The translations under genes were made by a program, and so were the position numbers. Positions 45,701 to 48,700 of a stretch of 63,860 nucleotides of DNA are shown here, one piece after another; within the stretch, counting starts at the first letter, position 1, and the number at the start of each line of letters is the position of its first letter. The notes below the pieces were generated by a model that saw only the letters and a program-made list of their open reading frames with translations, did no database searches and was not told the origin of the DNA. The DNA lies in the NCBI RefSeq assembly GCF_032191835.1, contig NC_083237.1, forward strand, positions 62,141 to 126,000, written 5' to 3'. Origin of the DNA: Heteronotia binoei (Eukaryota).

Positions 45701-48700
45701 GCTGCAAAGGCAGGCTCTGAGGGATTCCCATGAGCTTGGAGCCTCTGCCCAGGCCTGCTGTGGCCACCTTTGGCAGAGGCCAGGTGAGAGCGCTGGTCCT
45801 CAGGATGGAATCAGCACTGCTTAAAAGGCAGAGCGAATCCTCTGGTCAGTTCAGTCTCTCAAGAAACAGGCCTTTCCCCACATGCTCATCCTTCCTTCCT
45901 GGCCCTACTTTTCACACCAGAGCTGGGTGGATGAGAAGACGCCGTGGACCACGCGGTATGGCTCCATCGCTGGGCTGGCTGAACTTGGACACGATGTGAG
46001 TAGCCACGGGTGGCCCAGTGCATGCTGGGAAGGAAGGCCTGTCCGGGACAGCCAGAAGCCCAACCTTCCCTGGGGCACGTTTTGTCCACTAGGTGATCAA
46101 GACCTTGATCCTGCCGCGGCTCCAGGTGGAGGGGGACCGGGTCCGGGCAGTCCTCGAGGGGCCAGTCGTCAGCAATATCGACAAGATTGGAGCGGACCAC
46201 GTCCAGAGCCTCCTGCTGGTAGGGGGGGGGAGGGCTGGATAACTTCCCTGGTTGGCTTTCCAAGCCTTGGCAGAGAAGCATCAGAAGAGCCCTGCTGGGT
46301 CAGACCAGGGAGGGCCCATCTAGTCCAGCCACCTGTCTCACACAACAGCCAGCCAGTTCCTCTGGAGGGCCAACAACAGGGCAGAGAGGCCGAGGCCTTC
46401 CCCTGAGAAGAGCATCAGAAGAGCCCTGCTGGGTCAGACCAGGGAGGGCCCATCTAGTCCAGCCACTTGTCTCACACAACAGCCAGCCAGTTCCTCTGGA
46501 GGGCCAACAACAGGGCAGAGAGGCCGAGGCCTTCCCCTGTGAAGAACCTCAGAAGAGCCCTGCTGGGTCAGACCAGGGAGGGTCCATCTAGTCCAGCCTC
46601 CGGTCTCACACAGGGGCCAGCCAGTTCCTCTGGAGGGCCAACAACAGGGCAGAGAGGCTGAGGCCTTCATAAGAACCTCAGAAGAGCCCTGCTGGGTCAG
46701 ACCAATGAGGGTCCATCTAAACCAGCCTCCTGTCTCACACAGGGGCCACCCAGTTCCTCTGCAGGGCCAACAACAGGGCAGAGAGGCTGAGGCCTTCCCC
46801 TGAGAAGAACATCAGAAGAGCCCTGCTGGGTCAGACCAGGGAGGGTCCATCTAGTCCAGCCTCCTGTCTCACACAGGGGCCAACCAGTTCCTCTGGAGGG
46901 CCAACAACAGGGCAAAGAGGCTGAGGCCTTCCCCTGAGAAGAACATCAGAAGAGCCCTGCTGGATCAGACCAGAGAGGGTCCATCCAGTCCAGCCTCCTG
47001 TCTCACACAGGGGCCAACCAGTTCCTCTGCAGGGCCAACAACAGGGCAGAGAGGCTGAGGCCTTCCCCTGAGAAGAACATCAGAAGAGCCCTGCTGGGTC
47101 AGACCAGGGAGGGTCCATCTAGTCCAGCCTCCTGTCTCACACAGGGGCCAACCAGTTCCTCTGGAGGGCCAACAACAGGGCAAAGAGGCTGAGGCCTTCC
47201 CCTGAGAAGAACCTCAGAAAAGCCCTGCTGGATCAGACCAAGGAGGGTCCATCTAGTCTAGCCACCTGTCTCACACGGGCAGATTTAGTCCCCATCCCTA
47301 ACCAAGAGTTTGCCTTTTTCGCCACTGCAGCATACCTAGGACTGACACTTTCCTGAGCTCCCCGTTGTCCTCCCAGGATCTTTCTTCCTCTCTGTCTCAG
47401 CAAGTACAGCCTCCACCAGCCTGTGCTTGATGCTGGGATTTTCATCACCTAACACTTGGTCACCTGAGGCCGACCCCTCCCCCAGTTTGTGGAGGTCCTC
47501 TTGGAGCTCTTCAGCGTCAGCCTTCTAGGAGAAAATGGGAGAATGGCCCCCCTCCCCAGCAGGACTGGAGCCTTCCGGTGCCCCACAGTTGCCCTCCTCC
47601 TTGCACTGCAGGAGTGAGTGGGGAGCAGAGAAGGGGCGGGGGCCGCCTTCCCGGCCAGGGCTCACTTCCTTTCCTTCCCTTCCCTTCCCTTCCGCAGAAG
47701 CACTGCGCTCCTGTTGTGGCCAAGCTGCGCCCCGCGCCCGACAACCCTGAAGCTTACCGAGCAGAGTACGGCCCGCTGGGCAGCCTCCTGTGCACCCACG
47801 TGGTCAAGGCGCGTGCCCAGGCCGCCTTGCAAGCCCAGCAGGTGAACCGGACCACCCTGACCATCACCCAGGTGAGGAGGGAGGGAGGAGGCCCCTCTCT
47901 GGTCGGAAAAGAGTAACCCTGCCGCCCCCCGTCCTCTCTCGCTCCAGCCTCGCCCCACCCTGACCCTCTCCCAGGTGAGAAGGGAGGGAGGAGGCCCCGC
48001 TCTGGTCGGAAAAGAGTAACCCTGCCCCCCCCCCCGTCCTCTCTCGCTCCAGCCTCGTCCCACCCTGACCCTCTCCCAGGTGAGAAGGGAGGGAGGAGGC
48101 CCCGCTCTGGTCGGAAAAGAGTAACCCTGCCCCCCCCCCGTCCTCTCTCGCTCCAGCCTCGCCCCACCCTGACCCTCTCCCAGGTGAGAAGGGAGGGAGG
48201 AGGCCCCGCTCTGGTCGGAAAAGAGTAACCCTGCCCCCCCCCCCCGTCCTCTCTCGCTCCAGCCTCGCCCCACCCTGACGCTCTCCCAGGTGAGAAGGGA
48301 GGGAGGAGGCCCCTCTCTGGTCGGAAAAGAGTAACCCTGCCCCCCCCCCGTCCTCTCTCGCTCCAGCCTCGCCCCACCCTGACCCTCTCCCAGGTGAGAA
48401 GGGAGGGAGGAGGCCCCTCTCTGGTCGGAAAAGAGTAACCCTGCCCCCCCCCCCGGTCCTCTCTCGCTCCAGCCTCGCCCCACCCTGACGCTCTCCCAGG
48501 CCCCGCAAGGGGGGGGCGCTGCCTCCCGCCCGCCCAGCATCCTCAAGGTGCCCAGCTCCATCACGCTGCCCATGCAGACCCTGGTGTCCGCCCGGCCAGC
48601 CACCCCCACCCAGCCTTCGCCCCCGCCCACCAAGTTCATCGTCATGTCCTCGGCCTCCGGCACCTCCACGTCTCAGCAGGTGAGTGGCTGGGGGTGGGGG

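Follow-up and report, generated by a model that had tools for sequence, protein, structure and literature searches.

A probable young, self-healing intronic minisatellite with five decoy micro-exons in TAF6 of the gecko Heteronotia binoei

The gene for TFIID subunit 6 (TAF6) of the gecko Heteronotia binoei carries, at one of its exon junctions, a tandem array of six ~104-bp units, each composed of a short intron and the first 27 nt of the following exon. The array lies in a stretch of 63,860 nt (the window; positions 62,141 to 126,000 of contig NC_083237.1, assembly GCF_032191835.1, forward strand), from whose first nucleotide all coordinates in H. binoei are counted. It is probably a young minisatellite of the Heteronotia lineage that expanded neutrally within an intron, that heals itself through splicing and that leaves five internal copies of a coding segment as decoy micro-exons. 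No new introns are in use; instead, one existing intron has grown from ~77 to 601 nt.

Tandem Repeats Finder (TRF) delimits the array at 47852-48500 (period 104, 6.2 copies, 96% matches, score 1182), and this is its single occurrence in the 2.63-Gb assembly. Cut at the donors, it resolves into six head-to-tail units of 103-106 nt each that span 47872-48499 and consist of an intron copy followed by the 27-mer: unit 1 (47872-47974, intron copy of 76 nt), unit 2 (47975-48079, 78 nt), unit 3 (48080-48183, 77 nt), unit 4 (48184-48289, 79 nt), unit 5 (48290-48393, 77 nt), and unit 6 (48394-48499, 79 nt), the 27-mer of the last one being the start of the real exon. Each 27-mer encodes PRPTLTLSQ in frame with the flanking exons, and one open frame is kept when the five internal 27-mers are joined in between these exons. 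Every donor has CAG|GTGAG, continued as GTGAGG in unit 1 and as GTGAGA in units 2-6, the acceptors are identical in all units, ending in ...tcctctctcgctccag, and the duplication joints lie at CAG|G (within CCCAG|G). A candidate branch site, gtaAc (gagtaAc), located at 47913..47917 on the plus strand in unit 1 and thus 31 nt before the acceptor AG, recurs in every unit and might serve as the branch point of each, given its agreement with the yUnAy consensus. TRF and the dissection and alignment of the six units therefore confirm, base for base, the structure described in the initial annotation, i.e. six copies of a ~104-bp unit whose internal copies combine a full acceptor, nine in-frame codons for PRPTLTLSQ, and a donor.

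Six substitution sites vary among the units, in addition to the length of a poly-C run (10-12 C), with two of them in the 27-nt exon part and four in the ~77-nt intron part. Both 27-mer differences are synonymous (CGC>CGT at 48058; ACC>ACG at 48280 and 48490), as had been stated from the outset. Of the 81 single-base changes that a 27-mer allows, 26 are synonymous, so that two out of two would be expected by chance with a probability of ~0.1, which is not decisive on coding constraint; the exon part is no less variable than the intron part, and the copies, as far as their sequences tell, bear no sign of such constraint. A period of 210 fits slightly better in TRF (97% matches), corresponding to a weak higher order of two units, which hints that the copy number may have grown by two-unit steps.

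By its two domains and its match to the human ortholog, the host gene is TAF6. The annotated H. binoei protein in NCBI (P0133, 677 aa) contains the histone-fold TAF domain (PF02969, residues 13-77) and the TAF6_C HEAT domain (PF07571, residues 214-397), and the array junction falls past the HEAT-repeat domain, in a Ser/Thr/Pro-rich tail. A library search with the exon preceding the array likewise retrieved full-length TAF6 proteins. This exon (47698..47871, plus strand), which ends in ...NRTTLTITQ and whose donor at 47872 is used in mRNA, corresponds to human residues 429-486 (E 3e-27), while the real exon after the array (48473..48679, plus strand), the first 27 nt of which are the sixth copy with ctgacGctc, corresponds to human residues 487-552 (E 5e-18). 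The array thus occupies the junction equivalent to human residues 486/487, in line with the placement proposed initially. When joined with one 27-mer, the last three coding exons are identical to P0133 at 249/249 positions, which assigns the window to Bynoe's gecko (H. binoei), and the next best protein matches are those of other geckos with 86-88%. P0133 contains one PRPTLTLSQ and is the sole member of its own 90% cluster; its gene model may be based on RNA or on homology. When the protein collection was searched for H. binoei transcript fragments with residues 410-570 of P0133, it gave no gecko-level match (the best was 78% identical) and none with a repeated 9-mer.

The usage of the array was followed in four RNA runs aligned to 45200-50600, of which X1 and X2 consist of transcript contigs and X8 and X9 of raw reads. 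The sole joint spanning the region was placed at 47867->48469 (601 nt skipped, GT..AG, cut +4) and, once the 4-nt ambiguity is resolved, equals 47871->48473, i.e. it connects the first donor to the last acceptor. The intron as removed (47872..48472, plus strand) has a length of 601 nt with GT..AG ends and comprises five full units and the last intron copy. A 510-nt contig of X2 carries this direct join with 153 and 168 nt on either side and covers four exons (45935-45995, 46093-46218, 47700-47867, and 48469-48621). Furthermore, 17 reads carry it, 4 in X8 and 13 in X9 (with 13 different starts), which matches the counts for the neighbouring constitutive junction 48679->48769 (6 reads in X8, 11 in X9), so that the direct join is as frequent as a constitutive one. 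In the best of these reads, the shorter side of the joint still measures 36 and 47 nt and hence passes the 27-mer into sequence that is unique to the post-array exon.

No micro-exon joint was found in X2, X8, and X9. The depth in three bins across the array was 0 in X8 and 0, 0.1, and 0.07 in X9, where the flanking exons reach roughly 20. No RNA reads or joints were seen for the 27-nt decoy micro-exons, all on the plus strand, with the numbers 1 (47948..47974, PRPTLTLSQ with the derived C at 47965), 2 (48053..48079, with the synonymous CGT at 48058), 3 (48157..48183), and 5 (48367..48393). Decoy micro-exon 4 (48263..48289, plus strand) retains the ACG of the ancestor and cannot be distinguished from the first 27 nt of the real exon, an identity that extends over ccag plus the 27-mer, and the trace of ~31 bases around this copy in X9 was therefore read as one junction read aligned to the wrong copy. 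No RNA variant was flagged at 48490, as expected if the last copy has the ancestral G. The inference of five functional new introns and exons in the initial annotation was thus not supported, as the RNA shows 47871->48473 only and the intron count is unchanged.

Nested or stepwise routes via the internal acceptors were considered as well and rejected, as each of them leaves a 27-mer in the product. With CAG|CC at the junction between the upstream exon and a 27-mer, no donor is restored there, which leaves the direct first-to-last join and a recursion of zero length as the only ways to the observed mRNA. For the latter, the CAG|GT that closes every 27-mer would have to act as a zero-length recursive splice site that removes the intron in steps of ~104 nt and yields the same mRNA. 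Each 27-mer indeed ends with ctgac-cctctcc-cag|gtgaga, an acceptor-like and a donor-like element in juxtaposition, and the end product would be indistinguishable from that of direct splicing. However, the adenine of CTGAC lies 11 nt from the AG, below usual branch-to-AG distances, and gagtaAc, the better branch candidate, is followed after 31 nt by the acceptor AG of its own unit, which it would encounter before any other. Moreover, the host intron is only 601 nt long while known cases serve introns of many kilobases, and the motif can be read as the coding sequence of TLTLSQ plus a donor, an equivalent of which closes the upstream exon of every gecko compared. Recursive intermediates (lariats, a sawtooth pattern in nascent RNA) do not show in mature mRNA, and none were observed in the poly(A)-type or total RNA reads, which had no intronic depth. 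On the sequence features a recursive site seems unlikely, and stepwise removal as the route to the mRNA has, in our judgement, hardly any chance of being correct.

Three other gecko TAF6 loci were available for comparison, those of Gekko kuhli (L004), Paroedura picta (L005), and Eublepharis macularius (L006). All of them have a single intron at the position of the array (117 nt in G. kuhli, 77 nt in P. picta, and 97 nt in E. macularius), followed by one PRPTLTLSQ with ctgacGctc in the 27-mer. None of the three loci contains a tandem repeat at a TRF score of 100, and the same score returns three arrays in H. binoei TAF6; the array is therefore specific to the Heteronotia lineage. The intron position itself is ancestral, being shared by the three geckos and coinciding with the boundary at human residues 486/487, and only the intron length has changed. 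Likewise, the G of ctgacGctc is ancestral and was kept in copies 4 and 6, while copies 1, 2, 3, and 5 have the derived C. An imperfect direct repeat brackets the unit in all three geckos, with one of each arm: ccaccctgacc(a)tc(a)cccag|g ends the upstream exon and ccaccctgacgctctcccag|g ends the 27-mer. In H. binoei the upstream arm of this older repeat (ccaccctgacc..cccagg) is located at 47852..47872 on the plus strand, and its partner closes the 27-mer ~104 bp further downstream.

These observations outline a possible history of the array. The ancestral gecko TAF6 would have had one short intron flanked by the imperfect direct repeat ccaccctgac..cccagg, which encodes TLTITQ at the exon end and TLTLSQ 27 nt into the next exon. 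The two arms might have misaligned, either by replication slippage or by unequal exchange, with the joint in CCCAGG, thereby duplicating a 104-bp unit that consists of the intron and the first 27 nt of the next exon, and subsequent unequal exchange might have led to six units. Copy 4, with the ancestral 27-mer followed by gtgag, is what a joint within CCCAGG is expected to produce. As every unit contains an authentic donor and acceptor, such a duplication would heal itself: splicing from the donor at 47872 to the acceptor at 48472 would drop the extra copies and restore the ancestral mRNA and protein. The five internal 27-mers would be skipped because 27 nt is below the size that vertebrate spliceosomes recognise without dedicated enhancers. 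We infer the misalignment origin, this cause of skipping and the presence of the array in the animals that provided the RNA. Exons of <51 nt are known to splice inefficiently and to be left out frequently (Dominski and Kole 1991, in PMC8378409; PMC4317164), for which steric interference between the two splice-site complexes is the common explanation (Dominski and Kole 1991, Black 1991, in PMC8378409; PMC4317164).

Several points weigh against such a self-healing array with all decoys skipped, one of them concerning the origin of the RNA. Fixed differences from the assembly are seen in X8 and X9 (47772, 47795, 48598, 48780, 48894, 48951, and 48978) and, at another set of sites, in X2 (47769, 48571, and 48589). 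The runs, which have the same species label, thus diverge from the assembly by ~1-2% of exon bases and also differ mutually. Five of the six differences in the two array-flanking exons are synonymous, and one changes Thr to Ser (47795). H. binoei is a complex of deep lineages including hybrid parthenogens, which would explain this divergence, and the substitutions point to the RNA animals and the assembled animal as probable members of deep lineages under one species name. The copy number of a minisatellite can vary between such lineages, and if the RNA animals possess fewer than six units, or just a single one, their mRNA would be uninformative on skipping. What the RNA proves is a single-copy mRNA, not that six-unit pre-mRNAs skip all five modules; the annotation of P0133, which was made on the assembly, points in the same direction as the single-copy mRNA. 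Moreover, 17 junction reads limit inclusion loosely, to very roughly <20-40%, and reads with several 27-nt pieces could be partly aligned and hidden among unlisted loose ends. Finally, flanking introns of 76-79 nt favour intron definition, through which very short flanking introns can rescue micro-exons (PMC8378409), and the full skipping of five modules cannot be taken for granted. The short exons and the short introns pull in opposite ways, which makes the outcome unpredictable from sequence alone.

The same considerations bear on the possibility that the micro-exons are used, i.e. that one to five 27-nt segments are included in some tissues, stages or lineages and place (PRPTLTLSQ)n in the disordered TAF6 tail. 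Each module is in frame and has an authentic acceptor, a branch-site candidate and a donor, the 76-79-nt flanking introns are short enough for intron definition, which would help micro-exons (PMC8378409), both 27-mer substitutions are synonymous, and the RNA animals may be without the array. On the other hand, two raw-read runs and one contig provided neither a micro-exon joint nor depth on copies 1, 2, 3, and 5, the direct join equals the adjacent constitutive junction in read number, and the annotated protein is single-copy and alone in its 90% cluster. Two synonymous changes have a chance probability of ~0.1, the exon part is as variable as the intron part, and the array is absent from the three other geckos. 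We therefore regard usage of the micro-exons as unlikely. The notion of the initial annotation that repeat number and alternative inclusion tune the Ser/Thr/Pro tail gained no support either, with a single PRPTLTLSQ in P0133 and no inclusion in RNA, and all spanning joints in the RNA, from animals that may or may not carry the array, were 47871->48473. If the micro-exons were included in six-unit animals, they would be a very young instance of a minisatellite that generates new introns and exons in a single step, and one that is polymorphic within a species complex that includes hybrid parthenogens.

A different concern is whether the array exists at the assembled length, or whether the real genome has one unit or at least fewer units and the array was inflated by the assembler. 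A search of DNA sequencing runs with words from the array found none with >5% of the words, and small runs of the same species had 0; as no DNA run with the locus was found, the copy number is known from the assembly alone, which counts against the self-healing array as well. In addition, the poly-C length that varies between units (10-12 C) is typical for homopolymer errors, and a single-unit gene would yield the same mRNA. However, six substitution sites with patterns common to non-adjacent units and the fit of period 210 (97%) are the marks of an evolving array and not of copies of a single read, the contiguity of the assembly (2.63 Gb in 661 contigs) implies long reads that span the 628 bp many times, and other arrays of similar period are found nearby. 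An assembly artefact thus appears quite improbable.

The self-healing minisatellite is further favoured by its surroundings. At least seven arrays with periods of 80-240 bp occupy about an eighth of the window, such as those at 7055-8252 and 14376-14797 (period 80 bp each), 29708-30679 (period 139/243 bp), and 30887-33161 (period 109 bp, 20.9 copies). Two more belong to TAF6. One of them (39873-41256) extends over the donor end of the first coding exon, and its unit consists of the last ~40 nt of this exon (...KEVAQ|GTGAG), the donor and part of the intron. The first coding exon truly ends at 39916, and eight more copies of its end follow in the next intron, stopping near 40057, 40222, 40373, 40495, 40616, 40761, 40913, and 41035, some of them diverged. 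The annotated protein uses the first copy, and the three other geckos have one copy. The other array (46274-47276; 134 bp x7.5, 93% matches) is located inside a 1479-nt TAF6 intron. TAF6 lies ~100 kb from the contig or chromosome end here (C15:62141-126000) as well as in Paroedura (95881-105607) and Eublepharis (81-Mb record). Local repeat expansion so captures exon edges regardless of their ability to function, and its recurrence at TAF6 and frequency in the region favour a neutral over a built-for-purpose origin.

Three side observations from the RNA alignments concern neighbouring sequences. The 46274-47276 array has a summed RNA-contig depth of 10^4 and above with many internal joints, which indicates a repeat family with either scattered copies or abundant transcription. 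An element at 49363-49724, immediately behind the TAF6 stop, has a very high RNA depth, and its loose ends (...GGAAGCTGGGTT..., ...GGTAAAATGAGTACCCAGCTTGC...) read like a tRNA-derived short interspersed element (SINE), which makes it a candidate for a SINE of the squamate kind. At 49725-50600, a minus-strand transcript with a CT..AC intron (minus-strand GT..AG; 50309-50401) is covered in X8 and hardly in X9, and it probably stems from a neighbouring gene with tissue- or sample-specific expression.

The TAF6 array would be a clean natural case of a self-healing tandem duplication, in which five extra coding copies are tolerated in a core transcription-factor gene with the mRNA unchanged because the unit holds a complete intron. 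If the RNA animals carry the array, it would furthermore constitute a natural experiment on exon size, in which five 27-nt exons with authentic sites and 77-nt introns are all skipped, and such skipping, if true, would bear on the balance between exon definition and intron definition. As things stand, it is an ordinary neutral repeat expansion of modest interest.

Among known systems, intronic minisatellites (variable number tandem repeats, VNTRs) in GC-rich regions near chromosome ends share much with the H. binoei array: head-to-tail units of ~100 bp with a few percent divergence, unit variants and lineage-specific turnover. Many such arrays occupy these 64 kb, and the distance to a contig or chromosome end is ~100 kb here and in two other geckos. 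Unlike typical minisatellites, however, its unit holds a whole functional intron together with 27 nt of coding sequence, which makes up a complete in-frame exon module. With vertebrate micro-exons, for which upper limits of 27-30 nt or, by some definitions, 51 nt are set, the 27-mers have their size, frame, and flanking splice signals in common, whereas they are without inclusion in RNA and not conserved. The micro-exons known so far require enhancers and factors dedicated to them (PMC8378409, PMC4317164).

Two birds also have arrays at this TAF6 junction, and the units of both the emu locus (L007) and a second locus (L008) include the ...TLTITQ|GT donor. In the emu (GCA_036370855.1) the array at 7284-7562 (147 bp x1.9, 100% identity) has a unit made of the last 87 nt of the TLTITQ exon and 60 nt of intron, and a RefSeq-style protein (P0083, 721 aa) reads through the repeat with 49 extra residues; the repeat is either a very recent duplication or an artefact of assembly or annotation. 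The second bird locus (GCA_000691975.1) has an array at 20812-21307 (105 bp x4.7, 91% matches) with the unit ...QVTRTPLTITQ|GTGACC..., i.e. the exon end, the donor, and the intron start, and is likewise read through in a gene model (P0001), and its neighbouring introns are rich in G-rich 10-12 bp repeats. The bird units thus run from the upstream exon's 3' end into the intron, whereas the H. binoei unit includes the acceptor side, and the arrays of the birds and of H. binoei are independent events. The read-through models P0083 and P0001 may be annotation errors, and annotators should expect such gene models at exon-edge arrays of TAF6. In the annotated TAF6 of sharks and rays (P0085-P0089), the whole exon from PR(S/P)TLTISQ.. 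to ..SSTQQ is present in two tandem copies ~65 aa apart, which look like the outcome of an old duplication of this exon with both copies retained in the protein.

The concept that comes nearest to this array is the creation of introns by tandem duplication across AGGT, as put forward in Rogers' model, demonstrated experimentally by Hellsten et al. 2011 (PMC3265369) and described for potato RdRp (PMC4974935). As in these cases, the joints in H. binoei TAF6 lie at CAG|G, and splicing from the first donor to the last acceptor restores the mRNA and leaves the protein unaffected. The suggestion of the initial annotation that a duplication across AG|GT led to intron gain at this locus hence stands with respect to the joints and fails with respect to the gain, as the intron position is ancestral in three geckos. 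Unlike in the AGGT model, an existing intron was duplicated and lengthened, the former coding 27-mers became intronic, and the intron count remained unchanged, so that the logic is common to both while the defining result, a new intron position, is not.

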